From Bugula neritina (Eukaryota > Animalia > Bryozoa): a DNA stretch of 64,000 nt. The stretch is taken from NCBI GenBank assembly GCA_964035545.1, contig OZ037765.1, forward strand, positions 28,085,504 to 28,149,503, given 5' to 3'. A program made the translations under genes and the position numbers. Shown here one piece after another: positions 25,599 through 58,648 of this stretch (the first letter of the stretch is position 1; each line of letters begins with the position of its first letter). The notes below the pieces were generated by a model, which was not told the origin of the DNA, did no database searches, and was given only the letters and a program-made list of their open reading frames with translations.

Positions 25599-28500
25599 TT
25601 AGGAATAATGAGTAATCGTCTTAGCTAATAGCTCATCGCAAGTTTTCTTTGCGTCACCAAGCAACATGCCTACAAAAAGAACACAAATTATTTGTGTACA
25701 TACATGCAACAGAAAAATAACGTACACCAAGAACGAGAGATCACAGTTTTGCAGTGAATAGTTTGAGGTTAAGAATTCCGTGACAGAAAATTAATTTACG
25801 CCAGAAAAGGAGAGATTATTGTTGTGAATATTTCGAGGCTAAGAATTGTGACAAGTTAATGGCACAACATTAACATACCAACACGAACTTCAAATTATGA
25901 TATGTTCAATATTAAAATTCCATTATTTTAGTTATTCAAAGTTGTTTAGGAGCATTTTTCAAAAGGTTGATACCGAAATGAACACTTTCATAATGGCAGC
26001 TGGTGCATATTTTTAAAATTTCAAAACTAATGAGCCGTTGTCTCAATAATTAAAACATGTATTCTAATAAATTCAAGAATTATTATGCAGATACAGGGTA
26101 ATTCAAGTGCTTGTAAAGATTAGAATTAAGCGGCACCTGTGTTTTGTTTGAAGAAGATAGGGTTATCAACTGCTGCATAGCCCACTCCCAGGCTTCTCTT
26201 CATAACAACCACCTAAATCATGCATAATATACTCCATAACTCAATAGAAATATGATAATATTATGCAGGAGGCAAAATTTACAAGTGTAATGAATATAGC
26301 AATCGAAATTATTTAATATATCCGTATCAAGATCATAGATCTAAGAGACTCTAAACTCTATACGTAGACACTTATTAGACACATTAAAAACAGGTAATAA
26401 TTATTCTACAAGTTTCAACTATTATGAAATTACCACTGTGCAGAAGAGCTTACTGTAACATAGTTATACTTATGAGTGAACAGCTCATATTAGCTGGTTC
26501 TTCTAATTAAGGAACTAAAAACATCAATTTATCTAAAGAAACATGACTAAAAAATTCCAACAAGAATTCAGTTAAGAAAATAGTCAGCTACGAATAATCA
26601 GCTGAACGGTAGAGCTCTGGTAACGCACCTGCTGAGAATTCCACACTCTGAGAACAGGCATGCCGGCAATGATGCTGTTGGGGTCTTCTTCGGCAGCCGA
26701 GTTGACGGTATCGTTGGCTCCGATTACCAGCACAAGGTCAGTCTCTGGGAAGTCATCGTTGATCTCCTCCATCTCTAGTACCACGTCATACGGCACACCA
26801 GCCTCTGCCAGCAGCACGTTCAGCTGTCCGGGCATACGACCTTCAAGGTTAACAATAAATCTGTCAGCCTTTGGCCACACCAACACCTCTACCAGATGAG
26901 TGCATGCAGAGACAATACAAAGTGGTGTATACCTGCAACAGGGTGAATTCCAAATCTAACATTCTTTCCTTTCTTGGACAGAAGGCTGACGAGTTCAGCA
27001 ATAGGGTACTGGGCTTTAGCTACGCACAGGCCGTACCCGGGTACTATGATGATATTCTTACTCTCAGCTATCATGTCAACTACCATGTCGGAATTCACCT
27101 CTAAAAAGTAGAAAAAAGCAAATTACAAACTTGGACTGAATATGCCATTAATATAAAACTGTACATTAACCTCTAATTATAGGTTCATCAAGTTGCATGA
27201 CCTTATGATTGATAATTAACTTATTTCTCAACAATATAATGATACTTAAATCAATTGCATTAAAATTGATCCATCACTGTACAACTACTAATTAAAGAGA
27301 CTCTTGCTGGGACTGAGACAAGCAAGTTGCAAAAACATCAATAAAATATTCAAAACGTCTATTGGGCTTTAAACTGATTTTCAAATGTTTACTGCAATTC
27401 AACCACAACTATTTATTAGGCGCTAAAAACTTAAAGTTTGCACCTTAGCAAAACGAAGAAAAATTATATAAAGTTTCCGTATAAAATAAGCGCAACTAGT
27501 TGGTCATTTAAAAAACACAATCCTGCAAGTGTTAGTATGTCATTTCATGTTACCATTGACACATTGTAATCTCATCATTTAGAATAATCAGTACTAGCCT
27601 TTCTTGTATTATATGGAAACATAGGCCAATGCCAACCTACCAGTGTGAGTTCCTGTAATCTCCATAGGTTTGCCAGTCCCAGTAGAAGAAGTGCCATAAC
27701 CACCAAATATTACATTAGGGAGAGACCTATTCATAGCCTAACAATACAGTCATAGCATAAGAGTATTGATACAGTATTAAAGTTGGCATAGCCTGCAGAA
27801 GAATCTCAAGTATTATGCCAAACAGTACTGACTGCTCGATATGTTCTTTTATCCTTTAGAAAATTCATGAAAAAATGCTCAATTTTCTATTTGCTTTAAT
27901 AGAGACTATAAACAGTTATAAAGATTGCTTTACTGAGAACTACTGAATAACATCATAAGAGATGAGGTTGATACTCCCATACTGCTCTCCAATAAAACGA
28001 AATTAACTATATGTATATCTATAAGGCACTGACTTTTCGAATCTTATTTCTAGAAATATAAGGTTAATAACGGTTGACCAAAAGCGATAGAAAAAATAAT
28101 TTAGACAAGCAGGTTAGAAAAAGCATATGTGAAGAAAAAGTTTACTTAAATCTTATATAAATGTTGTGAAATGTTTTCCAACATACATTTACAATAAAAT
28201 AGACGAGTACAACACATCTGAGGTTCAAATTTTCGAAAACTGCCAGCAAATGTTTGATTTTAAGACCATCGCAGACGCATCTTGAATAATATATAAGAGA
28301 TTTATGATGAACTCGTCAGACTAAGCCAGTATTGTCACTGGATTTAGGAGCTTTATAAATATTTGCAGCTGGAAACTTGATATTCAAAAAGGAAACTGAC
28401 ATCAGCTTTTAATTGCTCAATTAATTACAATTAATTATTAAACATAACAGGATTGCATGCAAACTGGCTAATACTAAAACTTGACAACAATACTTACTAT

Positions 28501-31500
28501 TCGTGGCAACTCAACTAACACTAAAATCAAGCAATCAGCCGCACATTACTAGGAGTTAGCAATCACTGCCAGTAAACTACATCTATTACTTAGGCAGTTG
28601 TTAGTGCTCAGATAGAAGTGTATTAAACCAGGTTAAAACCATTTCACTCGTTACAGGTGAAAATAAAGATTTCAACTACTTTAGTAATCAATGCTATAAG
28701 CTGCATTAAGACATGGACACTGTGTAGTCCATGTAACTCTTAGAGTAATAAGCAAAGAGAATACTAATTCATTAAAATCTTATTCTGTTTCAAATAACAC
28801 AATTAATGAGTCACATGAGACGAAAAATGCTGGATAGATGACTCACCACACACATGATGTAGGAGAGAATAGCACCAGATGAGCCAATCAGAGCTCCCAC
28901 CACTGTCATCAGGTTGTTGTTCATCATGAAACCCTCGGCACAAAGGGCCCAGCCAGAGTATGAGTTTAGCACAGTGATTACCACGGGCATGTCAGCACCT
29001 AATTACACAACATGGTGACCAGTGGCAATCAGACATCCACCAAAGTTTTGCCATTGTGATAAATAATAGGTACACATTATCTTTACTTTTTTCAAAACTG
29101 CAGACAACAAAATATGAAATTGAAAGGCAAGGCTGTGCTGGTAAATACTATCTCAATATAACATCTAGCAAGACCACATTTAGCTAATAATGGTACTAAG
29201 CTAAAAGATGCAACATAAAGTCATCAACAGCATGTAAGAATTGAGTAAACATACCACCAATGGCAGCGGTGAGAGTGACACCCATCACACTTGACAGGGC
29301 GGTTGTACTTCCCAGCATGCCGAGCATGAGCGAGTAGTCTGAGGAGTTGAGGTAGGCACCCATGGCCGCGACATTACCCAAGGCCATGCCACCATTCAGT
29401 AGATTCTGCGCAGGTAACTTCATTGGGTCAGACTTAAGCAGACCTTAAAGGATGCATTACATCAATATACAATATGACACACCAAGTGCCTAGGAATAGA
29501 GGGTTTATTCTAACAGCTTTTTGCTGAAAACTAAACACCAAAACTCTACAATTATTTCACTCTACCAACTGCGTGAAATGCAATGAGTAAAGACAACACA
29601 AAAGCCTCACCAACCTTGCAACTTGCCGAAAGCAATAAGGGAGCCGGTGAAGGTGACTCCGCCAATGAAGGTGCCCAGAAACAGAGAGGTTTTGATGACA
29701 TTGGCGGCCGGGTCGGTGTCAAAGTGAGAATACTCAAACAGGAAGTTGGAGAAACAGGTGAGGACAGCGGCAGCACCCACTAAACTATGGAAGAGAGCGA
29801 CCATCTGAGGAAGGTCAGTCACTTCAATACGCTTAGCCATGACTGTGCCAATCAGTCCACCTAGAACAAACCAATAGTATTAATCATGGTCATGATATCC
29901 AATGAAAGAAAGCTATAGTTGATATATTTAGTTACAAGTAAGATAAAAGCATACCAAGACCCATTGTTGCTGCCATCTGAGTGATGACTTCAGCGGAAGG
30001 TTTCAGTAGCCCGAGAGTGGCTGCCACGCCAGAACTAACTCCCATAATACCAAGAGCATTTCCTACATGCAAATAATTATAGAATAGAAATTGTTATAAG
30101 CTGTCCTTTCTCATTTTTAGTTGTAAAACGGCTTAAACTGTATGTTTTGTGACCATCAGTTGTAAATAGAATTGAGAAAACAAGCTATGCCATGCAGAAT
30201 AAAATCTCCCACCTAAACAGCCTAGGAAACTAGAATAATGCCACAACAAATATTCTTAAAAAAGACAACAGTGCTAACTAATCTATAGGAAAATAGTGAT
30301 GTAAGCTGAAAGACAATTCCCAAGTATTGTTGATAAATTATATAGTAACAAGCATACCAACTCTTGCTGTTGACTGGGATGAAAGTCCAGTGAGAGATCC
30401 GATGCAGCAGAGAGAGGCACCGAGGTAGGCAGCTTGGTGCACCTCAGGGTACAGACCTGTTTGAGCAGCCACTCCGTAGGCACCAATAAATGCCAGGCCG
30501 GGAATAGCATACATCTTGTTGTACTCTGGAGGGTCGGCTGCATGTATCAACACAGTTGGGTAAAGTAACGGTAAGGAGAAACAACTGAATTCCCTGATTC
30601 CATATTATTCAAATAGCAATTATTTGAAACTAGTCGGTCAACAAGAAAGATAATAGGCCAATGTTTTCTTTTAGACTGAAACAATCAGCTACTTACTCGG
30701 CCGCTTGAACATGTCCAGCATCCTTTTCGTTACAACGAAACCGCCGCCGATGTTGATGCTGGAAATGAAGGCAGCAAGAGCAGCAAGGGTAGTGACGGTA
30801 TCGTTAGGCATATATCCACCGCCCATGAGCAACATGCCACCAACAGCAGTGATGCCAGAGATAGCATTGGTGACGGACATGAGAGGTGAATGTAAAGCAG
30901 GTGACACACCCCACACGGTGTGGTAACCTACAGAATATATGTATAAACAGTGTACTAATGCTGTCTTTAGTCATATGAGAGTTCATTTCCTGCCACTGGA
31001 TGACAGAGGATTTGCTGAGCAAGCTACAAGCTATGAATGTTAGCAGATACTACAGTCACGACGTGCTTTGAATACCAGCCATATAGTTTAGGATTGAAAG
31101 TTTGACTTGAGAAAAGTAAGTGAATTGTGAATGGCTACAAGAGTAACAAGTCTGAAACATGCACACATTAGAATATAGCTAACTACTACTACTCTGTGTC
31201 CATGTGCAGCATGACTTTGGAGTTGTGTACTTGCAATTTTCAGCACTAGACATAATATGCTGGTAGTTATTTACAGGACGCTGTAAGCATTCAGAAGCAA
31301 CAAGAACCTACATAACGCTTAAACTTACCAGTAAATTTGCAGTCATGACAATAAGTGAACAGTTTAATAACACATAACAAACAGGAAATGCTTTATTTAT
31401 ACCTGCAATTCCTGCCAGGGAGAATGTGGACAGCATCTGAGCGAATGCACTGTTAGGAGCTGCAACACCGAGTCCCACGAGACCCAGTAGTCCGGTACTG

Positions 31501-34500
31501 TAGAGTCCGGCCTCCTTGGCGTAATTGGCAAAATAGTTGGGCTCAGGTGGAGGCGCTTTCTCTACTTGAGCTGCCGGCGAGGCAGCTGGGGCAGCAGAAG
31601 TTTGAACCACACTAGCCGGCGGAGGCCACATCAGTTTGCCCTACAAATATTGCAGCCATTTTACTTAATTTAGTACACACTCCAAACCTCCAGTTTTTAG
31701 CTATATTTCACAATTTAGCTGCTAATGTATACGGGTTTTTGCTCTAAACTAATAAAAAATCAATAAATACATCCAAGTAATGAAGGTTATTTTTAATTTT
31801 GCTTAACTTCCCATGTTTTTCCTAATTATTTAATTAATCTGGATTTTCAGACCGTCACGGTTTTTTCATGACCGTCTGAAAAAACCGTGACGGTCTGAAA
31901 ATCCAGATTAATTAAATAATTAGGAAAAACATGGGAAGTTAAGCAAAATTAAAAAGAACCTTCATTACTTGGATGTATTTATTGATTTTTTATTAGTTTA
32001 GAGCAAAAACCCGTATACATTAGCAGCTAAATTGTGAAAAATAGCTAAAAACTGAAAATTTCGAGTGCACACTAAATTAAGTAAATGACCCACATGCATT
32101 CTTCCAGAGTGCGGCAACTAGACATACGAGATAGACATTCAACACATGAGCGCTATTGGCGAGAAGTACTTGCCTCATGAAGTATGATGCTACCACGAAC
32201 AACCTCATCTTCCAAGTTGATATTGAAGTGCTCCTTCTCTCCAATAGAGAGTAAGAACTTGGATATGTTGTTACCATAGAGTGTACTAGCTTGAGTAGGC
32301 AAACGGCTGGGCAGATCAGTGTAGCCTGTAAGAGTGAGAAAGATTGTATGCGAGTAGAAGCTACACGTTCGGATGTCACTAACCACTTTATTTATTTAAT
32401 ATATAGCATACAAGCCTATATTTATATACTATACATTAGAATAGAATAAATAGAAGTAATGCTGGGAAGATTTCACTATACATCTCTCCTGACTTGAACA
32501 TAACATCTCCCATGTACATGTACCACAGCTGGCAAAAGGTTTGCAGAATAAATCTTCTTTTTATATTTGATGCAGCTTTGCTAGATTTATGGTTACTATA
32601 AAAAAAACTACAACACTAAAGTTCCTCATAAATGAAAAATCAATTTTCTGCGACATACGCCATCTTGGTGCACATGTGAGCTGTAAAAAAGTTGACCTCA
32701 GTCAGGTTTTGTTTATTTAGTACTGTGGCAGCTTTACATTAACAGCATAGAAAGTCATATCAAACTCCATAGTCGCCAGAAACAGATGCTCATTATATAC
32801 AGCTTTATCAACAGTCATTATCTAAGAGTAGAGCCTCTCGGTGATAAGAGATCTCAAAACACATTTAACTTGCAATTGCAGATACAGTCAAACCAACTCA
32901 ATTAATATAGGCATTTGTACAACCCTGGAGTGTATCCACACATCATAGACTATATGTTGAGAATGAACACACTTTGGTGCAACTATTTGTCTTATTGGAA
33001 TGAATAGCATGGCCGAAGAAGAAACGATGTTAAATAAACTTATTCATGAGTAGACAAGCTGTATTCAGTAAAAAATAAAATAACTCAACATGGAGTATAA
33101 GTTACCTATATGAATGACATCGTGTATTTTAGCGAGTTGACCTGGCACTGTGGTTGCTACGTTACCACCTGCTTCGGCAGCAAGGTCAACAATCACAGAA
33201 CCCGGTTTCATCGACTTCACCATCTCTTCAGTGATGAGCTGCATTGGAAAAACGATAACATAATTCATGCGATCAGCTAGTAAGATTAGCATCCTGACAT
33301 TAACTACAATTACAATTCAACAATGCACACTTTATTTATCAGAAAGACTAAACCAGCTCCTTTCTAAAATAGTCAGGATTTCAAGTTATTGCATGTAGAA
33401 AAACAACATTATCATCGATCTTCATAATCCAATCCCAAAGTGCACATAAGTTAAGATAATAATAGTTATGGTGAGCAAGGGCCAAAATAAATGATGATAG
33501 CATCAACAGTCGCTGAAAATAACATAGAAAAGTTAAGCAGCTGCTTATGGAGTGACAACATAAAGCTCAACACGGATATCTTTCGATATACTTGCCTTAG
33601 GTGCAGGCTTTCCAGGTATCAGTGCTGTAGTGATGATGATATCACATTCTTTGGCCTGCTTAGCAAAGAGAGCCATTTCAGCTGCTATAAACTCTGGAGA
33701 CATTTCTTTGGCATAACCTCCTGCACCCTCTCCTGATTCCTGAAATATAGCAGTAACACCTGTGTGTCCAGGTAAACACATTCATAACTCAGAGAGTGTG
33801 TATCAAGAAACATTACTACCAACAAAATCAAATCCACAGAAATGTGAGTCAAACAGGCTTTCAGTTGGAGTAACCATTTAACACAGCATTGAACTATTGT
33901 TTATAAGTGGATTTTCACACCTCTATGTTGACTTGTAAAAACTCTGCTCCCAAAGATTCAATCTGCTCTTTCACAGAAGGTCTAACATCAAAACCTCTGA
34001 CGACAGCGCCCATACTTTTAGCTGTACCGATAGCTGCCAAACCAGCCACTCCACCACCAATTACCAATACCTTGGCTGGGGGAACTTTACCAGCAGCAGT
34101 AATTTGACCTTGAAAATTACAATAATCATTACACTCAAATAATTGCTAAATACCACAACATTTGATCACAGTTCTGTAAAAATAAAATTAACGCAGTACA
34201 ATAAAATAACAAAATGTTTGAAAAGTAATAAATTTATACTAACCAGTGAAGAACCTTCCAAAATGGTTAGCAGCTTCGACTACTGCTTTGTAACCAGCAA
34301 TGTTAGCCATGGAACTTAATGCATCAAACACCTGGGCTCTACTCACTCGAGGAATAGCGTCCATAGCAAACACGGTTAGTTCTTTTTTGGCCAACTCATC
34401 CACTAAAGCCTTGTTTTGAGCAGGATATACAAAACTTATCAAGTTTGCACGGCTTTGCAACAATCCCATCTCATCGCTAGAGGGTGCCCTAACTTTTAAA

Positions 34501-34844
34501 ACTATATCAGAGCCAAAAGCTTTATCACGGCTAACCAGGGAAGCGCCACTAGCAGCATATTCCTCATTCAAAAACTTAGCTTCAATTCCAGCTTCTTCTT
34601 CAACAGCAACATTGAAACCTTTTTTGGTTAGCAATGCGGTTGCTGCAGGTGATAATGCCACACGTTTCTCATTTTTAAACACTTCCCTTGGAACTCCAAT
34701 GGTCAGCTTGCTATATGCAATGCCGGGTATAGATTCGGCAGGCTTTTCATTTCCACTGCAGTATCTTCGATATGTCTTATGAAGTTGATTTCGCAGTGTT
34801 TGAACAGAAGAATTAGATACCTTTGCCAAGTGAAGCTTAAGCAT
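25599..34844 (-). CDS. NNT: Mitochondrial proton-translocating NAD(P) transhydrogenase
   Basis: About 17 coding exons in dI-dII-dIII order. Basic presequence, [127 protein letters not shown]. Confidence 0.98.
31660..32085. repeat. Long inverted repeat, 209-bp arms and 8-nt loop, in an NNT intron
   Basis: 31660-31868 is the reverse complement of 31877-32085 with no indels and about 9 mismatches. Confidence 0.95.
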
Positions 34845-35831
34845 TTTGAAGCCGAAGATACTTGCAACAGTATCTGAGACCGAAACTGTAAAAAAGGATG
34901 CATATTACATTTGTTACCCATCATACCAAACTTCTTCTGCTGCTATTTTATTAGTATCTTCATAATTTATATAGCACATAATAGTATTTATCATCAGTAG
35001 CTGACTTTAGATATAATTATAATAGGATGAACAAAAAAAAACAACTACTTTACAACTTTGGCAGAAATGACAGTTCTAACTAAGATTTAGCTATTGCTCA
35101 TTACTCATTAACATCAACATTAGACTTTAATTGAAAGGTCCATAATAAATATTTGCCATTACTTATAAATTAAACTTATAACATTAACTAATCATTTTTT
35201 ATCTAAAAATGCAATACCACTACCAGTTTCTAGCAGTAGCATCAGTATGAGTATTACTATCACTATGACTATCAGTATCACTATGAGTATGAGTGTGAGT
35301 ATGACTATAGACGTAGTCTATCACTGAGTCTAACTCTATGAGTATCAGTATGTCTATTACTATTAGATTTAATTTTATTATTACTATTACTATTATTATT
35401 AGTATTACCATCACTAATTGCTAGTGCTACTAAGTCTAATAGTAATACTAATAGTATTAGACTTAGTATTACTATTAGACTTAGAGTTAGTAGCACTAGC
35501 ACAGTGACAGTAGCAGTAGTACTACCATCATTATGATTATGTCTATTATTAAAATCATGCTTTAGCCAACTTGCAATCATTAAATTTTAAATATAAAATA
35601 AAAATTGAATATTAAATTTAATAAATACTATTTTAGTATTTAATATTCATAAAACAATAAATCATTATGATTATCATAATTTTAATTTAACTTATAATAT
35701 TTATATTGATGTTTAATTTTATACTAAAACTAGTGATTGTGGCGAGGACATCATGATCAACTTCAACATATTTTTTCAAACGAGTTATAATCAAGTTATA
35801 ATCATAATATTGATGCAAATAGGTTAATCAC

Positions 35832-36431
35832 CTGCTTAGTCTACCACTGCACAATAGCTGGCACCCCAGCAATCATTTTTATCCCGGCAACAGTTATTAA
35901 AATCCTTTGTCAAACTACTAGGCAGCGTGCGCCAGTTTTCTGACCCTTGACGTGCAAGTTCATTGGGGGGTCGTATGCAAAGCTTTTAAATATATATAAC
36001 TATAAAAGTTGAGTGCAAAATAATGTATACTATTTATAAAATTTTTTAGTTATTATTAAAATAATTTAAGTAAAATAAATGCATTGAATTTATTGTGTAA
36101 ACTTTTGAAATTACTTTTTGTTACTAGTTTCACCTCCTAGCTGCTACATGGAATGTCTTTCTTTCGGTCTTGCCAACCCAACAAATTATAGCCTTAGATT
36201 ATTTCAGTAAATACTTTATATCATTACTTTTGAGCATATCGATTTTATTTCTGGAAATTTTGAGCGTAGGCTTGCCTCCAAGGCTTTTCGAAAGCCGGCT
36301 TTTTTGCATAGGTGCTCACTACCATTTATTGCTGCAAGGAGTAGAGCTTTTCTGCCTCATTGTTTTGCTGGTGGCTCATCGCTGTTGCGTTTATCAAAAC
36401 TTACCTTACCACAGTATCAAAACGACTAAAT
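35832..36431. promoter_or_regulatory. Putative bidirectional promoter NNT/IDH2, including the NNT non-coding first exon
   Basis: Minus-strand donor CAG|GTGATT at ~35831 and acceptor ttttttacag at ~34887 imply a 5'UTR exon; IDH2 ATG at 36432; two GC-richer blocks flank an AT-rich core. Confidence 0.6.
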
Positions 36432-39395
<2,964 letters not shown>

Positions 39396-39956
39396 TTACT
39401 CACAACTTTTCTACAAATGAGGCACAACACTTACACTAGGCATTTTTCTATATGAAATAGTTTGACTTATTTTTGCTATATATTCATCCTGCCAAAGACC
39501 ATTAGCTATGTTTTTTGCCCAATTTACAGATCAACTGTTTTCTAAGATCTGATATTTAGCTGAAAGAAATTATAAATCAAAATTTTCTATGATATGTTCT
39601 GTTTTTGTAATTTTGGTAATAAATTGTCTGTAGTTGTATCAAGCTCTAAAATTTGTACACAATAGAGAGATTTGTTGATAGCTCTTCTTGAGTTTTGTGG
39701 TCTAATTTTAGTGCAAATTGATAAGAATTCAACAATACAAAGTACAGGCTGGTATGACAAGAAGTTAAGGGTTATGACATTTCATAGATTAAAATTAGGT
39801 AGTAATGTTTTATAACTTCGAGTTTAACAATATAGCTCAAATTGAGGTTTGTATTACCAAATCATTGTTAGCAAATTATTTTGCTTTCTTATCTACATAC
39901 ATAATCAAAAATTTAGTGCTCAGCTGGTGTCCGATTCAATAAATTGATGGCACATC

Positions 39957-42900: not shown

Positions 42901-45900
42901 CAGCTAGCTGCCATATATCGAGCAAAGACCTCTAAAAAGTTTCAGTCTCCTCTCATACAATTGACAAAGTATGGTATTTTACCAGATATACCTTCTCATC
43001 GCAACACAAACAAAGGCAGTGGTAAGGGTTAGCAGATGTAATGCAAAGCTCGGTTTTAGTTTACCTGGTTTCTGCGGCCTCGTGAAATATTAAAGTTTTG
43101 ACACTAGTAACTAAAGTGATAATTTAAAAAATAGCTTTTACCATATGAGTGTAATATTTGCAAGTATAAAGTTCTGTATTCTGCATTTATTACTTGTGTC
43201 AAGTTCATAATGTAATCTAATTATCCTAAACTGAATGTGTTATAATGACTCTATAAAACTTATACAGCATATGTGTTACCTTTTAAAACAAAGTAGTATA
43301 ATGAGGAGATAATTTTTTACAAGATGGCAGCAGAAATATACCTACCAACGCTATTTCTTCACACGGGACCCACGCGGCAGCGAGTTACTCTACGCCTCAG
43401 TAAGTTTTATGCTGTAGCATATATTACAGTACTACAACATATGTTGCAGTGCTATAACACATAATACAGCGCTATAACATAATTATATTACAGTGATATA
43501 ACATATATTACAGTGCTATAACATATTATATTGCAGTGATATAACATATTATATTGCAGTGATATAACATATTATATTGCAGTGATATAACATATAATGC
43601 AGTGCATATGACATCTATTACAGTTACATGAACCAAGTGTATGCTAAATAATAAACATTATTCACCATATTCTAACATAAAGATCTATAAATTTGTTTTC
43701 AAGGAATATTTTACTAAACATATTCTTTAGGAATAAATAAAACACAGTGTATAATTTGTATATTTTAGACAAAATTATAAAAATGAAGGTAAAATTTCTT
43801 TAATTGTGTTAACAGTTGCATAGTTTTACTAACTTATTTTGTGATTTGTTATACAAAAGTTACCTTTGGAACTGGGCTTAGTAGCCATAAGTAGTAATTT
43901 GAGCATTTATTTAGGTTCTACACATAACCTGGTGCCTGCTGCATCAGCAACAAGTCCTGTGAAAAAGAAACTGAAGCAAAATTATGTTTCAATAAGTGAC
44001 AAATCAGTAGCGGCCAGTGGAACAGTAAATTCTGAGGTTTACACTTGGGAGCAGTTTATAACTTGGGGCAATTCAAAAGCAACTAGTAAAGATAGAAAAA
44101 CCAAATTGGTTTTAGGAACTAAGTAAGTAAATTATATTTCATAAAATAAGCAAATTATTAGTCTAAATTACCATGTATAAACATGCATTATATATAACAT
44201 CAGATTTCGCTTTACTAAAATATGATGCTGCAATGATTGATGTAAATTTTAAGAAATCTTCTAAAGATGCAGACTCCAAGCATTACTAGAGGCATAGATG
44301 AATTTGACAGAAAAGCTTTAGCATATGCTAATTCATCCGCAATGGGAATAAAGAAATCTGTTTCTCACATGTGGCAGCTGATGCGAGGCTCCTTCATCCA
44401 ACGTCTTAAACAATCACTAGCAGACACTGACTACCATGAGAATAAAGCTCGCTCATCAGGAGAAATGAATAACCTAATGCAAGTAATATTATCTCAGTTA
44501 ACGGGCTTTGTGAAAATTTTCCTCCATTTTATCCAATTTGAGTTTTCAATATTGGATCAATCTTTAAATAAAGATCAGATAACTCCTGTTACAATATTTG
44601 CATCTGTCTGAAAATGGCTGGTTAACTGTATGTTTTATACTTGTAAAGAAAAAAGTTGTAAACTTGTGGAAACTGTCAATCTTTAATTAAAAAAGAAAAA
44701 TTCACAATCATCAGTTTTTGTACAGACCAACAGCTTTCCATCCTGTTTTACTTGTTCATGTTTGCTATATGAAATATTCTCATGTTCATAAAATAATCTT
44801 ACCTCATGTGTTATAAAGTAATCCATGTCTTCACAAGCCATAACTGCAATCAGCATTCATAACAAGTTTCACTGGCAGAGATTATCATAAAAAAGCAATA
44901 CCTGTGCATAAATTTGAATTGCTGTCAAAACTAATTAATTATTTCTTACCTATCTTCACCTATCTCCACACTGTCCTGTTTAAAGACAGGTGAGGATTAT
45001 TGTTTTGTCTAAACTCTTGCTTATGATGATCTACTAAGACTTGAAATTTATGAATAAAAATATTACAACCTAAATGTGTGTGTTTTAAAAAAAATATTAC
45101 ACACTTTTGGTTGATTGTTTATTGGAAGTTCATAGAGTTTATTTTATACTTTACTTTTCTCGTCTATTTTAATGCGAAACGTCTTTGGAGAATAAATGAT
45201 AAGATCACCAAAAAGTATGCCCTATGCAAAAATTATATACTAGAATATTATAACTTTTATTATTGAAATATTGCAACAAAAATTTTTTTCAAAGGAATCA
45301 CGCTAAAAACCAATTAATCAAAACAGTACATATGAATATTGTTTACAAAGCATTATAGAAATATTCTTACTTGATAAAATCAAAGAAAATTAGTATATAA
45401 TACATATGGTTGTATCATAAATGTGCAGGAAAAAAACAGGGTTTGATTTCACAAATCCAGTGAGCCATTTGAAATTGAACTGGATGAAGATCACATTGAG
45501 AGGGAATCGAATGATGATTAGAGAGATCAACAAAAGACAAAGGCAAGCTCTATTTAATGCACTTCAACTGAATTGTAACACTTGGTTAAATTTTATAATT
45601 AAGCAATTTATAAGATAATTACTACTTATGCAATAAATGAAAAAAGTATAGCACTTGGCATAATGCCCAATTCAAGGTTTTTGTCCCAAGTTAGAACTAT
45701 GTAGCTAAATAATACATACGAATGTAGTTGTCTTTGATCTATTTTAAAATATATATTCCATTACTTGTACGTGAATAATTATGATGAGAACTTATCACAT
45801 TGTAAAAAATACTTTTGATTTTCTTGATAGCCTATCTTGTTGTGATAGGAAAAATTGTACTTAAAGTGATTTGTTATTGCATTTCCCCTCAATTTATTCA

Positions 45901-48746
45901 TGCAAGTTTTTACACTTCAATCTAAAATATTATATGAAATTTTCTGATGTTGTTTATTAACTTGCTAGTTGCATAATATGCTATAATTATAATTTTCTTT
46001 TCTTCTAATCTGTTAAATAACAAAATATGTCTTTATAGCCCTAATTTTACTTAAGAGCACTTTGTAATTATGTATTATAGTAAGCATCACTGTTGTTGGC
46101 ATATTTGTGTTGTAACCTGTTTTTATAGAGAAGCTTTGTCAAGGTATGAATCAATCATACATTCGAAGGAAATCTCAGATACCACTAAATGGAAGCATAA
46201 ATGGAGTCAACATTTTCAATCAAAAAATAGAGCTTCTGAGTCAAAAGGACCAGATCAATATGTTGAATGGTATGATCATTTACAATATATACTTTATATA
46301 TGCTTTATAAAATATGCTTTGTGTTGTGCGTGGTGATCATGGTGTGTATGTGGGGGGGGGGGGGGTTAAATGTTGACGACTATAAAGTTTCATAAAATGG
46401 AGTGGACAACTACAATGTTGTTTATTTGCATGAAAAATGCTTGCCACTCGTCAGGGTGATATAAGCTGAGTATATGCACATGTATAAAAGATACTTTACA
46501 GAGCCAGAGTGTGTTCTGCAGAGCATTTCACTGTTTATAATATAATGTTTAGACCTGAGAAGTCCGAGCAAGTTGAAAATGCTGCTGGCATTTCAGCATC
46601 AAATATAATTAGTCCGCCCACTAAGTATTACTAGGATTACATAAACCTACTATAATTATAATCACTTATATCGCTCTACTCAATAACACATTTTAGTTGC
46701 TTCAACTTAAGCTTGTAGTCATGTGGGTACTAAGTAGCTTTACTAAACTATTAATTACTGAGCTATCATTGATTATTTCTCTACTGTGTAATCCATTTGC
46801 AGACTACTTCAGATTAGAACATAGCTAGTGGATTGAGTAATTGATAAGTAAACAAGGATTTAAAATACAAACATGGTTATCATGATGTTCAAATGCCAAT
46901 CAATCAACCAATTTTCTAAGATTTTTGCCTTATCATAGAGACACATTACAGAGAAAGCAAGTTTTGCACTGAAATACAATGTTGCAATGTATGCATAATT
47001 TTTACAAAATCCATCTGCAATATATCTTGTAATAATTGCTGAGAAATTCAGCTGTTTTTCTTTAGTTTATATTTCCTAAAATACAGTTCAAAAGATAATT
47101 ACATTCAATAGCTGTAAACTCTAATTAGCAGGTTGTTTGGTGCCCGACTTTTTAGATGATTTATGGCAACTCATTTACATCATAGGAAATGCAAACAATT
47201 AATCTGCAGCTGCTATAAATAGGATTCTAAATTGCTGATTGTAATAAGTCACAAACACAAATTGCAATATTTGCTTATCAAAAGGTAGAGTTAGAGATAC
47301 AGCAAATTTTCAACTTTTGTCGACTGGTTATATGTTATTATTAAGATCACTGGCCAGTAAGTTTGTTTATTTCCTCCAGATTCGACTGCTTTATCCAAAG
47401 CTTGAGCTATCACAGCTTCAATTAGCTGTTGCAGTCAACTAGTGTATTTTGAGATGTTTCAAATTTATTTTTTGACACCTATTTCTAAAATTTACAATTA
47501 TAAAATGCATTTTTCTACAAGCAAGTTTATATGATATTATTGTTTTAATTGTAGCCTAGAAGTACTGTATAAAGAAGCAACGAAAATTCAGCTCCACGAA
47601 AACCCATTAGTTATTCAGTTACTGAATAACATAAAACATGCACATTCTGATGATAGAATTAAATACATAACAATATTCAGGGGACAGGTATGTGTCAATT
47701 ACCAGCTGCTAACTTTTTATTACTGAAGTTTTGTATCGATCTGCTTTAAAGTGAACAGTCGTATTATAATATTTTTCATTTCTTTTGTTGCAGGTGAAAA
47801 TTCAAGCTATAGTAAGATCTTTGCCAGCGTTTGAGTTGTGCACATTACAGATGCAACAAGCTTTACAGGTTTGTTACATCAACCTACTCAGAGCATTAAG
47901 CTAGTCAAGCTGTTTCATGTTGACAAGATTAATTTGGTTGTTTACTAGTTTGAGAGCTGAGAGTTCAAAGTCTTCAATGAAACATTTGCGGCTTAACAAC
48001 ATATTACTTTCTATATTCGTTTGCATCATGTGGTTTTTTGGCTTAGTCAGTCTGCTCATATGTCTTACCAACAGGTGTTCATAGATCAATAATTAACTCA
48101 GCTAAAGGAGAAACGGAAAGCACAGAATTTACCAACAGGGCTATACATCATTTTGCTTTAGTAGTCTACAATTTTTTTGCTATTCATCAAAATAGTCAAC
48201 ACAAATTAGTTTTGTAATGTATAAAGGTGGTTTCGTGGCCCACCCAAGCAACTAAAATCAATTTCAAAAGTTTATAATGGGCATTCGCTAATTTTCCAAG
48301 CTGATAAACAAATTAAAGGTTGTTATTCTTAGGTTTTGATGAATGATTCAATCCTGGAAGTTTTTGCAGACATATAGAACATTAAAGTAATTCTAACATC
48401 AATATTTTGCTCGATGACAGAATTTAAAGTATCCAGAAATCTGAAGTCTTGTAGAGTTATATATTTTACTGATTGCTTGTTATAGTACGTATTAGTTGAG
48501 ATTCTGCAAGGAGAAATAGACATGCTAGTTCCAATGTTTCAATCCAGAGGTCTACCCATTCACCCAGGAGTCTTGGAGAACACCAAAGTTGCCAACTTGG
48601 ATTACATGAAGAAGCTTCCTAAACTGACAGTTAAGGATTACATTGGAACAAACAGGGTGCTGTCTTCCTCCCCACCTACACGCCCAGGGATGAGTAGAGA
48701 CATGATTGGTCGCTTACAGAAATATGTCATCTACGGCACACCTTGA
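39957..48746 (+). CDS. Uncharacterised large multi-exon protein, basic/Lys-rich, no family recognised
   Basis: In-phase GT-AG exons traced at 39957-40103, 40249-40407, 40908-41078, 41238-41333, 41664-41840, then ~42110 onward; further exon-like ORFs at ~42388, 42864, 43916, 44260, 45430, 46129, 47534, 47794; terminal ORF ending 48746 with AATAAA at ~48930. The 3' half of the model is tentative. Confidence 0.6.
43420..43605. repeat. Intronic minisatellite, ~18-23-bp unit (cagtgatataacatattatattg)
   Basis: Visible tandem units. Confidence 0.85.
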
Positions 48747-49413
48747 TACAGCTGACAATATATCCCCACTATATATATTGCCGTTGAAATCCAAGCAACT
48801 ATTGATATGCAATAACTATAATTTATATCATTTAGTGAACTCTACATACTATCCTACAATGTTATTTAGCAATGCTATTTTTATAAGAAGTGTATTAAAT
48901 GGTGCTGTGATTTTATTATAAACATTACAAATAAAATTTATTTATTTACCAGTACTATCTAATAATATTAACAGAAGGTTTATTCACACTAGCTTCAATA
49001 CAAAAACATAAATTCAGTAAAACATATATTATGTTAAAAGATAGATTTCAAAGTAGCACTGATAAAATAATACCAGGAACTGCTAGTAACAGCTAAAATC
49101 AACTTTCTTAATAATAAAAATATATAATTAAATTGCAGAGTTAAATAAAATATTAGTTTTAATAGTAAACCTATTTTATGTCAATACTTTATATTTATTA
49201 TTATTTCAGTTAAAGTTAGTACTTTAATTAATAATAATCATACCATTAAAAAATTCTTAACAGTAGCACTGCACTTACTAAAACTCCTACTATAGAGCAA
49301 CTACTTTAAATAATTTTACAACACTAATATTTTCTCTTCACTAATTAGAATTTTGAATAGAAATTAACTTGAAATGAGTATACAGTAGGTTGAGAACAAT
49401 CTCAACAATATTT

Positions 49414-51834
49414 TTATTCTAACTTGTAAACTAAGCAGTCATCAAATATTTCTCCCTGAGTATCCATTCCTCCATGGACCAGAATCATCTTACAGGTGTT
49501 CACTTTTGAAGAGTCTGTTTCCAGGTGATTAGATGCCCCTTTAAAAATATTTTATTTCAATTAATTTTATAACAAAACATAAAATAATATTACAGTACTT
49601 GATCTTGACATTATGTAATACTTCATTATAAATGCAGAACAATTATTATTGCACTAAAAATATTTTAGCTTCTCGTTGCAACCTTCTTGTGCCTCTAAGG
49701 AAGCACTGGCTAATGATTCAGAAACTTCTTCCACCTGTTTCTCAGAATCCATTTCTATACTCCAAGATATCACACAGCAAGCCATATCCAGTCTTGGAGC
49801 GGGTGGTGCTCCTGCAGCCAGCAATAAAATCAAGCAGTAAATATGCACTAAGGTTAAAGTTATTATTTAATATTTATTTATTAGCCTTCTCAGGTTGAAA
49901 TTTGATAACTTGTTTACTGAAGTTAAAGCCTATTTTACACAACAAGTCAATAATCTATTGCCATATTTTTATTTAATAAAATTAAAAACACACCTTCAAC
50001 TTGACATTGTGACCACTGCATAGTTGAAGTATCTAGTTTCCAAAGGTCATCAAGAGCCATGCCTTCTTTACTCATCCCCCCAAAAATATACAAATTGGTT
50101 CCCTCAGTTACTGCCGCATGGGCGGCTCTAGGTTCCGGTAAATTCCGCTTTTTTATCTTCGGAGTTATCCAACAACCCTTTTCTAAATCTAATACGTGGA
50201 GATCATTATAGAATTTGGACCCGGCCATTCCTCCGAAGCAGTATATCTTGTTTGCTATGACCGTCAATGAGTGACCATGCCTTGGCGACGGGCTTTCCCC
50301 GGATATAGAGAGGGAACTCCACGAGTTTGACGAGACATCATAGGAATAGACTTGCCTATCTTGCACAGGCTCAGTGCCACTTTTACCACCTGAGAATATA
50401 TACACGCAGTCGCCAAATGAGGCTGTAGTGTGGTGTGTTCGGGGAGAGGGTGCTGTTCCAGATGCCTTCACGCTAATCCATTTTTCAGTTTTCAAGTCAA
50501 AATACTGAACAAAACCTTCTGCAATGTTTGACTCTTGAGTTGCACCTGCCAACACGTAAACCCTGTCAGGCTGTGAGGATGGAATAAAGGAGATGTGCTC
50601 ATATCGGGAGTTGAAACCTGGTGGAGTCAGCAAGTTCCAGGAGAGAGTGTTGGTGTCTAAAGTATGAACGTCACTGAAACATTCACTTGGATTGGCTCCA
50701 CCGACAATGAGTACTTTCTGAGTCACACCATCGCTTGCGTCTGCACCTGTAGGAGAAAAGGAATTAGTTAGCTTATTTAATGTACTACACCACGCATATT
50801 GTGTGCTAAAAATCATTTGACCTAGACTTTAACCTGAACAGATGAAAATACTCTAAACATAGTAATGCATATTTCAATATCAGACAATATGGTGGGATGG
50901 TATGATAGCCAGCCATACAAGCTATAAAGTGTCTAATGATGGAAATACAGAATAATCATTCTTATACTTGTGTCAGCTTGAAGCATTTAGTCTGTGACAG
51001 CCTGATATTACAAGTAAGCTAAGGGCTGTGCCTCTCAACATGCTGGGAACATGGTTTGAGAGTCTTTGCTGTGACACAAAAGCCTTTATGATTAAACTCT
51101 TTTACATCTAGGTTTAAAGATTTACTTTCTCTGCCATGCACATATATAAAGCTGCTGAAAACAATTGTGCTTCAGCAGTAGAAGAATCTGTAGAATAAAA
51201 GTAGAACTTAGATAAAACTGATTTTTTTTTTCAAAAACATACATGTGTTAAATGTGCGAAAATACTTGAATTAAAATTTTTTGTCTAACCTCTAATTTAT
51301 TTTTAGTTTTAAAGCTCATTAACTTTGGCAGAGTTTTGAAGATTGAATGTCAATTATATAGACCTGCGACCAGAGCCGATAGCATGCCTCTGTACTGCTA
51401 GCTCATTTTATTTGCAAAGTTTTTCATTAAATTAAACCACAATCTGTGATTAACATCAGTTTTTTATTAGAAAGTTACAAAAACAAGCATTTATCTTAAT
51501 GAAAATGACAGAGATCAGGTATATGACCAAAAATATATTTAAAAACATGTCCCTTCCAAAATCTCTGTACAAATTAGGTTCTAGATTTTATTCAGACTCC
51601 ATTGTACAAAAATAGTTTAAAAGAAGATGCTACAAACATTTTTGGTGATAAAAAGATCTTGAACTAATTTTAATGTTATTCAACCACCAAATAAATTATG
51701 TATGAAGTCTTACTTGCTATAGACACAGATGTGTGACCGACTCTAAGAGATGGGCGATCACCAAATGCAGACACGACATACCAGAGACTAGATTTGGGGA
51801 TAACATTCTCTTCTAGTACAGGGTGTAGCTCCAT
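49414..51834 (-). CDS. RABEPK: Rab9 effector protein with kelch motifs (p40)
   Basis: Exons 51834-51714, 50746-~49994, ~49812-49684, 49538-49414. N-terminus MELHPVLEE...WYVV...RVGHTS, kelch repeats (IVGGANP, PSPRTHH, PSPRHGHS, FGGMAG), C-terminus HGGMDTQGEIFDDCLVY. Confidence 0.9.
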
Positions 51835-51836
51835 CT

Positions 51837-52061
51837 CTATAAGATAGCACAGATCGTAGATTCAACCAATTTAGTGGCTGTTTCACTCTGCTTCTGTGCA
51901 TTTGCCACAACTAGATACGGCCCCAGTTTAACGTCACCTGGGTTTAAGGCAGCTTCTTGACGTTTCTGCTGTTTAAATATTCTTGCTGCCGCGTCTTGGT
52001 ATCTCTCATCAATCTTTGTTTCCAAATATTTTAAACGTTTTGAACTGAGTTGGTTAGTCAT
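51837..52061 (-). CDS. Candidate 74-aa upstream ORF/microprotein on the RABEPK transcript
   Basis: ATG-initiated ORF, GC-richer than flanking intron DNA, preceded by acceptor tctttgacag (~52087), ends TAG-AG-ATG(RABEPK). No family recognised. Confidence 0.4.
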   Translation of the reverse strand: MTNQLSSKRLKYLETKIDERYQDAAARIFKQQKRQEAALNPGDVKLGPYLVVANAQKQSETATKLVESTICAIL

Positions 52062-54034
52062 AGATGATCATAGTTGGCAAGTTTGTCTGTCAAAGAAGAT
52101 GTATGAAACATTAAATATCAGACTAACAGCAACAATATGTACAATAATATAAAGGAACATAAAATCAAATAGACAAATTATAACTAACTTTAAAAAAAAT
52201 TTTTTTTTGCATTACTAAGAAGTTAGAGGTCTATCCAGCTTACCCAACATAACATCTAGTTCATAATACCTAATTGAATAATTTATAATACTGTTATGGT
52301 ACTTGTTTGGCAGTTTAGTTTTCCTTCTATTTTAAACCTTATTTTCAAAGTGCACAAAATTTTAGGCTAGAATATTCAAAACACAGTTGAAGTGCATCAG
52401 GTGAGTTAATTTAACAAATTGGCAAATTATACATTAAATTTCGCTGAAAATTTTACCACTATACTAAATATCCACAACTCTCCTGTATCATAAATAATTA
52501 CTATAAATATTTAAAGACACACTGGTGGCAGTATTTAAAATTTTGATTTTACTTTCAATCAACTAGTCACCCTGGTGTAAAATAGTATACTAATCTGTTG
52601 CTATAACAACCATTATAACAAACAAATGAGCCAATACTGCATTGATTGAGAATCAATAAATATTCTCATCCTAATTATTGAACCTTTAATTAACTTTTTA
52701 CTAATATGATTTATGCTGACTCTAAAAAAGACCTGATTAGACGTTATTAGCTACTTTTTCATACTGTAATTCACCCTCAACTCTGTAGAACCTATTCAAG
52801 CATGCAAAAGCATAGAATACCAGAAAATGATAGAAATTTCCAACAATAGATTTCAGTAGAGAATAATCATTGACTGATCTGACAATTTGATGGTTATTTT
52901 TATTACCAGTAAGTGTTTCTTTCACAAGGATGGTTATAACTGTCTAAACAGGAAATATGTCATATGATGCCACTGACCTTGAAAATCAGCAATTCTCTAT
53001 TAATGAACCTATTTTTATTACCATTACTCTTATAGCTGTCATAATCATTACCATTACTGTTGGTAATACTCAAACCTTACCCAAGTCACAGCAAGTTAAG
53101 GTGAAGATAAGGATAACCAAGTCAAGTCATTAGTCATGGTTCAGATGAAAAAATTAAGTCTAAGTCAAGTCTAGCCAACCAATGATTTGAAACAACTCAT
53201 TGAATTTAAATTTACTTGCAGGTGCCTATCAGTATCTAATAGATCGATTACAAATTACAATAAGCAGAAATTTGTAGATAGTTGTACTGTTAGTGTTACA
53301 TGCATTTGATTCATCAGCTTAAACAAAAACAAACCTTAAAACTAATGATTGAACTGTTAACTGCTTTGAAATTAATCTACAGTTATATTGAATAACTATA
53401 TTCATATTCATATTGAATTTTATATTCACTGAAAGTAAATAATAAATCAATAACAAAAAACTGGTGTGCTAGTCACGTAGTACGTAGTAGCTTTAGTAGC
53501 ACTACAAAGAAATTGGTAGATTACCATCAGTTTAAGTTTTAGTTGTTTCACTGTTATTTTATAGTTATACAAAAACATCATAATGATAATCATAATGATA
53601 ATCATAATGTTATGAGTTACAAAATAAAATTATTTTAAAGCTCAGCTGAAGAAGAAATTTCAAAGCTGAAAATATTAAATAAGATATTTAAGATATAGTA
53701 ATATTGATAATAACAATGGTAATGCAGTTATAATGAATAGTCATTACGATTATCATAATCATAATGAACTTTTAGTTTTATCTTCAATTTCAACTTCAAG
53801 TTTTACTTTTAGTTCAACTTCAACTTGAAGTTTCTTTATAAGTATGGAAATCTGTTTAGTTTGACTTTGAGCCTTGAAATTTGAGTTGAAAGCTTACAAA
53901 GCAAAATTTTAAAAATACTATCTATGTATAACATTTGTATGCAATGTTGAATAAAACAAATTGCTTAGAATAAAAACTGATTGAGTTTGGCATCACCATC
54001 ATCATGATCACATTTTTTTACCCTTTTCAAAAAG

Positions 54035-56588: not shown

Positions 56589-57449
56589 TCAAGAAATTCC
56601 ATCATTATCTGACGTGAACATTTTCCAATAAACTTCATACGACGCATTTATAATGCCCCATGAAAGTAAAGATCTTGTAAAATTTAAATGAACACCTCGA
56701 AACATTTTTCTCCAGGATCTATTTCGTTCATTGAATACCGTATTATATGTGTCTATAATGCCGATGAATTCTCCTCCCATTTTTGATTGCATTCTGGTCT
56801 TGATGACATTAATTGGATAGAAAGTTGTGCTTATACTAGCACCCAGGACAGCACCACTAATAAAGTCAGTACATATATTGCCTAAAGGAGTATCAGATGA
56901 TGGTAACATTTGTTTTAGAGGTTTTCTGATAAGAAAAAAAGCAGCATTGCTAGGACCATTTCTTATAAGAACGCAAGAAAGACCTCTGTAGTATTCACGC
57001 AATCCGTATGATTTAAGCGCAGAGGCAGCGTGAAATGTATTTCGAAAATGGCCATGATATTTCTTGTCTTGCATCAAAACTTGGATTCGTTCAAACGGAC
57101 AAAGTATCGCCTCCATACAACCAGCAATCAACGCAGCATTTGCATCACAAACTCTTTTATCCCATGTTGTGGTGGCCGATAGGTACATCCTATAGTGATC
57201 ATACATTCCAAACATTATAGACATGGAGGCTGTCTTTTGAGCCATCGGAGAAAGCATGCCACGGTATAAACTTCTGAACCCCTCTTTGTAAACTTGGTCA
57301 ATAGATTTGAAAAGACGGATGCCATGAAGTTGCTGCCTGAACATGATTTTGTGAATTGGGTATGTGATGGTAATGTTGGTGAAGGCAGCACCAGCACCAC
57401 ATATAAATTCCTTAGGATGAAATAGAGGTGCATTCTCTAAAATAGCCAT
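56589..57449 (-). CDS. SLC25A51: Mitochondrial NAD+ carrier SLC25A51/MCART1-like, 286 aa, single coding exon
   Basis: Carrier motifs YPIHKIMFRQQ, CPFERIQVLMQ, YPINVIKTRMQ and subfamily-typical QKT, RNGPSN and RSLLSWGIINASYE. ATG at 57449 just after the acceptor ttttgcag. Confidence 0.92.
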   Translation of the reverse strand: MAILENAPLFHPKEFICGAGAAFTNITITYPIHKIMFRQQLHGIRLFKSIDQVYKEGFRSLYRGMLSPMAQKTASMSIMFGMYDHYRMYLSATTTWDKRVCDANAALIAGCMEAILCPFERIQVLMQDKKYHGHFRNTFHAASALKSYGLREYYRGLSCVLIRNGPSNAAFFLIRKPLKQMLPSSDTPLGNICTDFISGAVLGASISTTFYPINVIKTRMQSKMGGEFIGIIDTYNTVFNERNRSWRKMFRGVHLNFTRSLLSWGIINASYEVYWKMFTSDNDGIS

Positions 57450-58640: not shown

Positions 58641-58648
58641 AGTAAAAC

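Follow-up and report, generated by a model that had tools for sequence, protein, structure and literature searches.

Stable linkage of genes that are non-homologous and functionally coupled is rare in animals, and NNT and IDH2 are the main producers of NADPH in the mitochondrial matrix. Among the closest described systems are HSPE1-HSPD1 and HADHA-HADHB, co-regulated 5'-5' pairs whose members are partners in the mitochondrion (Irimia et al. 2012, PMC3514665), and functional coupling between NNT and IDH2 is itself treated in PMC3363418, PMC5426036 and PMC7542157. We analysed a 64,000-nucleotide stretch of the genome of the cheilostome bryozoan Bugula neritina (C1:28.09-28.15 Mb; hereafter the window), for which the original prediction had proposed a cluster of NNT, IDH2 and SLC25A51 within ~32 kb. 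Pfam matches, tblastn and PDB scores recovered all three genes where they had been called (Table 1). As a cluster of three, the proposal held in part: NNT and IDH2 stay paired across phyla, and SLC25A51 is tightly linked to them in bryozoans only.

Table 1 Features of the window (positions counted from its first letter) and spacing of the NNT pair in six other species.
Feature	Position or species	Strand	Description
DCX + IQ-motif gene	17358..24695	minus	directly downstream of NNT; DCX, IQ (Pfam)
NNT (proton-translocating NAD(P) transhydrogenase)	25599..34844	minus	complete multi-exon gene; ATG 34844, stop 25599-25601
Divergent intergenic region, NNT ATG to IDH2 ATG	34845..36431		1,587 bp; putative shared/bidirectional promoter
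IDH2 (mitochondrial NADP-dependent isocitrate dehydrogenase)	36432..39395	plus	~10 coding exons; Iso_dh (Pfam); exon 1 = predicted presequence
Stretch without recognisable gene	39396..49416		~10 kb
Kelch-repeat beta-propeller gene	~49417-52067	minus	Kelch_KLHDC2_KLHL20_DRC7 5e-60, Kelch_4 on 3' exon (Pfam)
SLC25A51 orthologue (mitochondrial NAD+ carrier)	56589..57449	minus	single coding exon; likely start Met 57449
NNT-IDH2 gap	Watersipora (bryozoan)		3.1 kb between annotated gene ends
NNT-IDH2 gap	Tubulanus (nemertean)		1.5 kb between annotated gene ends
NNT-IDH2 gap	Mytilus (mussel)		1.8 kb between annotated gene ends
NNT-IDH2 gap	Owenia (annelid)		0.84 kb between annotated gene ends
NNT-IDH2 gap	Daphnia (crustacean)		1.3 kb between annotated gene ends
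NNT-Iso_dh gap	Ornithodoros (tick)		4.6 kb between annotated gene ends

NNT and IDH2 were queried exon by exon rather than as joined spliced models. The NNT gene fits the fused dI-dII-dIII architecture (AlaDh_PNT_N/C, PNTB_4TM, PNTB) expected of a full-length NNT (~1060-1090 aa), with Pfam matches to AlaDh_PNT_N in exon 1 (34239-34844, minus; 3e-41) and to PNTB in the exon at 26584-26886 (1e-38). Residues 3-1060 of the Watersipora protein were covered by 14 tblastn segments running from 34841 to 25602 of the window, and a search of the species' own genome, which recovered the PNTB exons, revealed a single NNT locus on its chromosome-scale contigs. In the neighbouring isocitrate dehydrogenase gene, the C-terminal exon scored 110 bits against solved structures of mitochondrial IDH2, compared with 76 bits for those of cytosolic IDH1. 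The translation of exon 1, read directly, appears as a basic, Ser/Thr/Ala-rich presequence, and the own-genome search returned a single IDH1-like paralogue, located at 23.10 Mb of C2. By score, predicted presequence and this separate paralogue, the gene is classed as mitochondrial-type IDH2.

The SLC25A51 reading frame is open to 57506 (56589-57506, minus; 305 aa), contains three Mito_carr repeats (Pfam) and is 75% identical to a Watersipora SLC25A51-like protein. A protein search gave 851 matches, of which the best 120 reach E 2e-86; all named proteins among these 120 are SLC25A51 or SLC25A51-like and come from several phyla. One locus was found in the B. neritina genome, the sole other match being 22% identical and located on a small contig. 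By these sequence comparisons the window gene is the SLC25A51 orthologue rather than another SLC25 member, and NAD+ transport is its predicted activity.

Two unrelated genes were said to lie between IDH2 and SLC25A51. One of them, the Kelch gene, is real; exon 1 is 53% identical to positions 20642-20845 of the Watersipora locus (L009), where an annotated 376-aa Kelch gene is the next gene after SLC25A51. It is unrelated to NAD(P) metabolism. A more specific name for it was dropped, as an Atlas search led to generic Kelch propeller clusters only. The call of a second gene was rejected: six ORF pieces at 39.4-49.4 kb contained no family over the Pfam cut-off, with only two matches at E ~0.03, and no Rfam family was found in the window. 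On the other side of the pair, the DCX/IQ gene has a counterpart downstream of NNT in Watersipora, with exons 69-91% identical, and no match in the non-bryozoan loci.

We then compared the arrangement across nine genomes (Bugula neritina, Watersipora, Tubulanus, Mytilus, Owenia, Daphnia, Ornithodoros, Helobdella and Limulus). NNT and IDH2 are divergent (5'-5') and 0.8-4.6 kb apart in seven of the nine, representing five phyla (two bryozoans, a nemertean, a mollusc, an annelid, a crustacean and a tick), always as IDH2 (-) / NNT (+) in locus orientation. The pair was not found in Helobdella (leech), and in Limulus it did not appear within a distance of 10 kb. Six species other than B. neritina carry an Iso_dh gene of 445-469 aa head-to-head with NNT. 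In five of them, exon identity between the neighbour and the IDH2 of the window is 50-94%, in most cases at least 70%, and the scores of the neighbour's exons add up to more against IDH2 than against the IDH1-like paralogue, with small margins in Owenia and Daphnia. The C-terminal exons of the Tubulanus and Daphnia neighbours also scored higher against solved IDH2 than against IDH1. The sixth, the Ornithodoros neighbour, was counted as a pair member by its Iso_dh annotation, its conserved exons lying outside the compared locus.

As an internal control, we looked for the other window genes beside the non-bryozoan loci and found none in their flanks; the gene annotated 3' of NNT, where there is one, varies by species. 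Since the head-to-head arrangement is kept across five phyla while the other neighbours change, NNT-IDH2 is a conserved two-gene unit, with SLC25A51 as a loosely linked third gene. Judged from these gene orders, the pair is at least as old as the protostome ancestor. Protein searches with NNT, using a full-length query and a 12-sequence profile, returned only protostomes among the named proteins in the best 120 listed; clusters of N-terminal NNT fragments held one named protein only, from a flatworm. Among the papers that it covered, our literature search found no earlier account of NNT-IDH2 microsynteny.

SLC25A51 behaves differently. In the window it lies 17 kb from NNT/IDH2, and in Watersipora it is found at 26.516 Mb with NNT at 26.592 Mb (separation about 65-75 kb). 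The Watersipora locus is collinear with the window at unrelated neighbours as well (the Kelch gene, the DCX/IQ gene and an unnamed gene), so the bryozoan linkage of SLC25A51 amounts to ordinary synteny. The two genes share a chromosome in Tubulanus (SLC25A51 at 16.19 Mb, NNT at 13.59 Mb; 2.6 Mb apart) and in Mytilus (16.36 and 18.15 Mb; 1.8 Mb apart). The longest contigs that carry them in Babylonia (whelk) and Oratosquilla (mantis shrimp) are unequal in length, and therefore represent different chromosomes. Among the species compared, bryozoans alone have SLC25A51 close to NNT/IDH2. Assuming uniform placement on the 35.6-Mb chromosome (our own arithmetic), the chance of SLC25A51 falling within 17 kb of NNT-IDH2 is ~1 in 1000; with 20-50 candidate NAD(P) partner genes taken into account, it becomes 0.3-5%, which is not compelling across a scan of thousands of windows.

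The original prediction had named linkage limited to one species, or lost as fast as that of random neighbours, as evidence against itself; this describes SLC25A51 and does not describe NNT-IDH2. Its own caveat, that shared ancestral linkage plus local shuffling could bring the genes together, accounts better for SLC25A51. It also suggested a look for more NAD(P) genes nearby; own-genome searches revealed no malic enzyme, NAD kinase or sirtuin near C1:28.1 Mb, and the matches were located elsewhere (malic enzyme on C6, NAD kinase on C5, sirtuins on C3 and C4).

We also inspected the intergenic region between NNT and IDH2. It is AT-rich, contains a degenerate minisatellite at 35241-35492 (tandem repeat search) and has no CpG-island-like peak in its composition. 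A blastn comparison with the Watersipora intergenic region gave no significant block. Across the intergenic regions of six species, no conserved block or motif was detected, and unbiased 7-10-mers occurred at the level of chance relative to shuffles, the divergence being too great for this to count against co-regulation. Searches with patterns for NRF1, GABP/ETS, CRE, YY1, ERR, SP1, DRE and E-box yielded nothing beyond chance and no classic site in common. The gaps of 0.8-4.6 kb mostly exceed the distance that strict bidirectional promoters usually span (<1 kb), which we counted against promoter sharing.

Our preferred reading, which we hold to be probable, is that NNT and IDH2 form an ancient divergent pair, that they have been kept together by a short 5' regulatory region through which the expression of both is coordinated, and that SLC25A51 is not part of this pair. 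NNT reduces NADP+ with NADH by drawing on the proton gradient, IDH2 interconverts isocitrate and 2-oxoglutarate with NADP(H), and the two enzymes are biochemically coupled. The pair looks like a conserved 5'-5' pair of the HSPD1-HSPE1 kind and is probably co-regulated. SLC25A51 would have sat on the same ancestral chromosome and come near through ordinary intrachromosomal rearrangement in the cheilostome lineage, its position being incidental to the unit. NNT and IDH2 are not known to be adjacent in human or in other vertebrates, so the constraint would not be absolute.

The pair could instead be a neutral relic, its short gap offering few breakpoints and remaining unbroken in most lineages without any regulatory coupling. 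Such an account would suit both the failure to detect a conserved intergenic element or common motif and the loss of the pair, with no obvious effect, in Helobdella, seemingly in Limulus and in vertebrates, where it is not known to be adjacent. We nevertheless judge it rather unlikely, because the same 5'-5' orientation persists in at least six deeply separated lineages while all other adjacencies around NNT, IDH2 and SLC25A51 have been replaced, the products are direct biochemical partners, as would not be expected of a random surviving pair, and the arrangement agrees with what is predicted for conserved pairs under co-regulation (PMC3514665). Regulatory entanglement, in which one gene has enhancers located within or past its partner (a bystander arrangement or genomic regulatory block) with no shared promoter, is the second mechanism recognised for such pairs (PMC3514665), and gaps reaching 3-4.6 kb, as in Watersipora and the tick, exceed those of classic bidirectional promoters. 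Blocks of that type typically join developmental regulators to long gene deserts, whereas NNT and IDH2 are both housekeeping genes of metabolism, and their strict 5'-5' orientation across short gaps speaks for a shared promoter. We consider entanglement quite improbable.

The reading from which the analysis started, a selected trio of non-homologous genes linked for co-regulated supply of matrix NAD+ and NADPH, appears highly improbable and is largely refuted outside bryozoans. Three genuine orthologues do lie within 32 kb, their linkage recurs within ~75 kb in a second bryozoan, and of the five species in which SLC25A51 and NNT both sit on chromosome-scale sequences, three have them on one chromosome. 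Against this stand the distances and separate chromosomes of the non-bryozoan species, the conservation in Watersipora of neighbours that have nothing to do with the trio, at least one unrelated gene and ~10 kb without a recognisable gene in between, and the failure of the malic enzyme, NAD kinase and sirtuin searches to reveal further partners close by. A more elaborate scenario would combine a previously unrecognised NNT-IDH2 regulatory unit of bilaterian age, whose shared bidirectional promoter sets the stoichiometry of the two matrix NADPH enzymes, with its splitting in vertebrates only, by reciprocal paralogue loss after the two genome duplications (2R), and the recruitment of SLC25A51 in bryozoans into the regulatory neighbourhood of the pair as a nascent NAD(P) trio. 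Human 5p12 (NNT), 15q26 (IDH2) and 9p13 may be paralogous 2R segments, as suggested by their neighbours (FGF10/HCN1 versus FGF7/HCN4; SHB versus SHF). We consider this scenario unlikely.

A head-to-head NNT-IDH2 pair that goes back at least to the protostome ancestor is independent evolutionary evidence that the transhydrogenase and the NADP-dependent isocitrate dehydrogenase work as one system. This idea has long been proposed for matrix NADPH supply, the isocitrate/2-oxoglutarate cycle and reductive carboxylation, where expression must be balanced. For work in Daphnia, mussels and other tractable invertebrates, the intergenic region is a compact, testable candidate for bidirectional regulation. 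Furthermore, the three-gene cluster arises mostly from ancestral linkage at the scale of the chromosome, and cluster calls made from a single genome deserve caution.

Compared with known systems, NNT-IDH2 is most like the conserved ancestral microsyntenic pairs (CAMPs) of PMC3514665, in that its members are nuclear genes for mitochondrial proteins, are functionally coupled without being homologous and are transcribed divergently across a short gap. Like CAMPs, it has been kept across phyla with occasional lineage losses. It differs from them in being known here from gene order, with a putative promoter, and presumably in not being adjacent in human, so that human-anchored surveys would miss it. 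Metabolic gene clusters, including those for fungal and plant secondary metabolites and the rare animal cases, likewise link genes that are not homologous but act on a common metabolite pool; unlike in those clusters, only NNT and IDH2 are stably linked here, SLC25A51 showing chromosome-scale linkage outside bryozoans. That broader linkage is as would be expected of genes in one bilaterian ancestral linkage group (Simakov et al. 2022, PMC8809688), SLC25A51 and NNT-IDH2 being co-chromosomal in bryozoan, nemertean and mussel. Bacterial pntAB operons encode the same enzyme family (PNT domains), but animal NNT is a single fused polypeptide, and its link to IDH2 is made through divergent transcription rather than an operon.

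The real feature of this locus is an ancient, divergent NNT-IDH2 pair, and SLC25A51 is a loosely linked bystander that lies close to it in bryozoans, apparently by happenstance. All three genes of the trio, which the original prediction had read as a candidate mitochondrial NAD+/NADPH gene cluster, were confirmed in the window, positions 28085504-28149503 of contig C1, by Pfam, tblastn, scores against solved structures and named matches, the spliced genes being searched one exon at a time with no joined gene model. NNT exon 1 matched AlaDh_PNT_N (3e-41) and a 3' exon matched PNTB (1e-38) in Pfam; 14 tblastn segments, running from window position 34841 to 25602, covered residues 3-1060 of NNT from the second cheilostome bryozoan, Watersipora subatra, and the gene occupied a single locus among the chromosome-scale contigs of the source genome. 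For IDH2, Iso_dh exons ran from an ATG at 36432 to a stop at 39395. Its first exon, read directly, is basic and Ser/Thr/Ala-rich with an acidic residue at the last position only, a composition typical of a matrix-targeting sequence, which it putatively encodes. The mid-protein exon did not separate IDH1 from IDH2; the C-terminal exon was closer to solved mitochondrial IDH2 (110 bits) than to cytosolic IDH1 (76 bits), and a second, IDH1-like NADP-IDH was located on contig C2 at 23.10 Mb. SLC25A51 is one ORF with three Mito_carr repeats (Pfam), present at one locus in the source genome, with a W. subatra protein as closest named relative (75% identity). Its named matches, among those listed, were all SLC25A51, from Mollusca, Annelida, Nemertea, Brachiopoda, Arthropoda, Echinodermata, Hemichordata and Chordata; a 99%-identical copy is present on JGI metagenome contigs.

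Features along the window
Feature	Position	Strand	Remarks
GPCR fragment	2.9-5.6 kb	plus	
MTO1/GidA-type gene	7.4-9.0 kb (exons 7448-9038)	minus	Pfam GIDA on three exons
LIN7-like gene	13.2-13.8 kb (13206-13753)	plus	L27 domain exon, then PDZ exon
DCX+IQ gene	17.4-24.7 kb	minus	
NNT	25.6-34.8 kb	minus	
Minisatellite	35241-35492		Degenerate, 6/12/18-bp; ITI/SIS-type pseudo-ORFs; in NNT-IDH2 intergenic DNA
IDH2	36.4-39.4 kb	plus	
Kelch gene	49.4-52.1 kb	minus	
SLC25A51	56.6-57.4 kb	minus	
Minisatellite	58350-58920		Similar to that at 35241-35492; upstream of SLC25A51
Short conserved exon	59824-60030	ambiguous (frame also)	No Pfam family; 40% identity over 68 aa to part of a 197-aa gene upstream of Watersipora SLC25A51
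Trinucleotide-type repeat	63380-64000		Long; poly-Val, poly-Ser, poly-Thr or poly-Leu ORFs in all frames; strong negative GC skew

Of the two intervening genes that had been proposed, one was recovered, as the Kelch gene, but the ~10 kb between IDH2 and it held no recognisable gene. The MTO1/GidA-type gene, ~17 kb beyond NNT, is a nuclear gene for a mitochondrial tRNA modification enzyme, unconnected to NAD(P) supply.

With NNT set as the plus strand, six other species carried a 445-469-aa Iso_dh gene directly upstream on the minus strand. The gaps, measured between annotated gene ends, were 3.1 kb in Watersipora, 1.5 kb in Tubulanus polymorphus (Nemertea), 1.8 kb in Mytilus edulis, 0.84 kb in Owenia fusiformis, 1.3 kb in Daphnia magna and 4.6 kb in the tick Ornithodoros turicata; in the window, 1,587 bp separates the two ATGs. 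By tblastn, the neighbour's exons in the first five of these species were 50-94% identical to the window's IDH2 exons (mostly at least 70%), and summed scores favoured IDH2 over the IDH1-like paralogue in all five, with small margins for Owenia and Daphnia. The C-terminal exon scored 97 bits against solved IDH2 and 78 bits against IDH1 in Tubulanus, and 94 and 82 bits, respectively, in Daphnia; the Ornithodoros neighbour (445 aa, Iso_dh) was assigned from annotation alone. The pair was thus kept in seven of the nine genomes, representing five phyla. It is absent from Helobdella, whose NNT has an unrelated same-strand gene upstream, and in Limulus there is no IDH exon within 10 kb of NNT, itself 51 kb long. 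All nine genomes are protostomes, and full-length NNT searches named protostomes only among the matches listed; by parsimony, the pair dates to the protostome ancestor at least. Among the non-bryozoans with an annotated 3' neighbour within 10 kb of NNT, that neighbour varies: Tubulanus has fucosyltransferase genes there, Mytilus an EF-hand gene and Owenia Kazal genes. When all ORFs of the window were compared in six frames with the loci retrieved, no other window gene turned up outside bryozoans, indicating that NNT-IDH2 is the sole adjacency here to survive between phyla.

The Watersipora locus (OY755158.1) has SLC25A51 at 26,516,285-26,517,169, followed ~10 kb downstream by a same-strand Kelch gene of 376 aa, the IDH2 end at ~26,588,659, NNT at 26,591,801-26,611,778 and then a DCX/IQ gene, an order and orientation identical to the window's; tblastn also matched the window's first Kelch exon and its DCX exons there, along with the unnamed exon on the far side of SLC25A51. 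SLC25A51 lies ~65-75 kb from the pair in this species, and because unrelated neighbours are collinear too, the bryozoan trio linkage reflects plain collinearity, not selective retention. The caveat that shared ancestral linkage plus local shuffling might explain the trio gives the better account of SLC25A51: this gene and the pair share a chromosome in Tubulanus (16.19 Mb versus 13.58-13.60 Mb for IDH2/NNT, 16.7-Mb chromosome) and Mytilus (16.36 Mb versus 18.15 Mb for NNT, 82-Mb chromosome). Such chromosome-scale linkage in several spiralians agrees with membership of a single ancestral linkage group. The longest NNT- and SLC25A51-bearing sequences are unequal in size in Babylonia areolata and Oratosquilla oratoria, indicating different chromosomes. 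The human genes presumably have members of shared four-fold paralogy groups beside them (FGF10/HCN1 at 5p12 versus FGF7/HCN4 on 15q; SHB at 9p13 versus SHF on 15q), which would fit a single pre-duplication chromosome. Tubulanus SLC25A51 (OZ123233.1, 16.18-16.21 Mb) sits amid MFS, PTH2, RPN11/JAB, MRP-S35 and HD-domain genes, all unrelated to the window's neighbours.

By our own arithmetic, uniform placement would bring SLC25A51 to within 17 kb of the pair with a chance of ~1e-3 on the window's contig (35.64 Mb) and of ~1.6e-4 genome-wide (216-Mb assembly). The chance rises to ~0.3-5% if any of 20-50 genes would be accepted as mitochondrial NAD(P) partners; judged across thousands of windows, the proximity is unremarkable. 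The original prediction also suggested looking nearby for further NAD(P) genes; genes for NAD kinase, sirtuins and malic enzyme all lie away from the window. The three-gene cluster interpretation is only partly supported: the NNT-IDH2 adjacency is conserved, whereas SLC25A51 is tightly linked to it, among the genomes compared, in bryozoans only.

Searches of the source genome returned other matches. Seven small contigs (C35, C62, C86, C137, C228, C234 and C320) bear near full-length Iso_dh, PNTB, SIR2 and carrier matches broken solely by in-frame TAA/TAG, a pattern that would fit a contaminating or associated eukaryote reading TAA/TAG as sense, e.g. a ciliate, rather than bryozoan genes. An intronless Iso_dh ORF on the window's contig (C1:3639578-3640555, minus strand) spans the whole Pfam model (open frame 379 aa, E 6e-103; 326-aa stretch, 8.5e-105); it is of the IDH3/IPMDH rather than NADP-IDH type, and may be a retrogene or have come from a foreign source.

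Full-text literature searches returned no report of NNT-IDH2 adjacency, which the supplementary pair lists of microsynteny surveys could include; what the present analysis adds is the conservation of the head-to-head arrangement across phyla. The adjacency may have survived neutrally, or enhancer entanglement may keep the genes together. The intergenic regions examined yielded no motif in common, no conserved stretch of sequence and no CpG-rich core, and that of the window is AT-rich with its degenerate minisatellite. We favour a putative shared or interdependent promoter region, which would balance expression of both genes, on the grounds of their metabolic coupling and of the features of the pair itself. 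NNT and IDH2 are the two main, metabolically coupled sources of matrix NADPH, a subject on which three papers bear (PMC3363418, PMC5426036, PMC7542157). Co-regulated pairs such as HSPE1-HSPD1 and HADHA-HADHB are known among conserved ancestral microsyntenic pairs (PMC3514665), and NNT-IDH2 resembles them in being strictly 5'-5' with short gaps, in the functional partnership of its two genes and in its occasional loss from a lineage.
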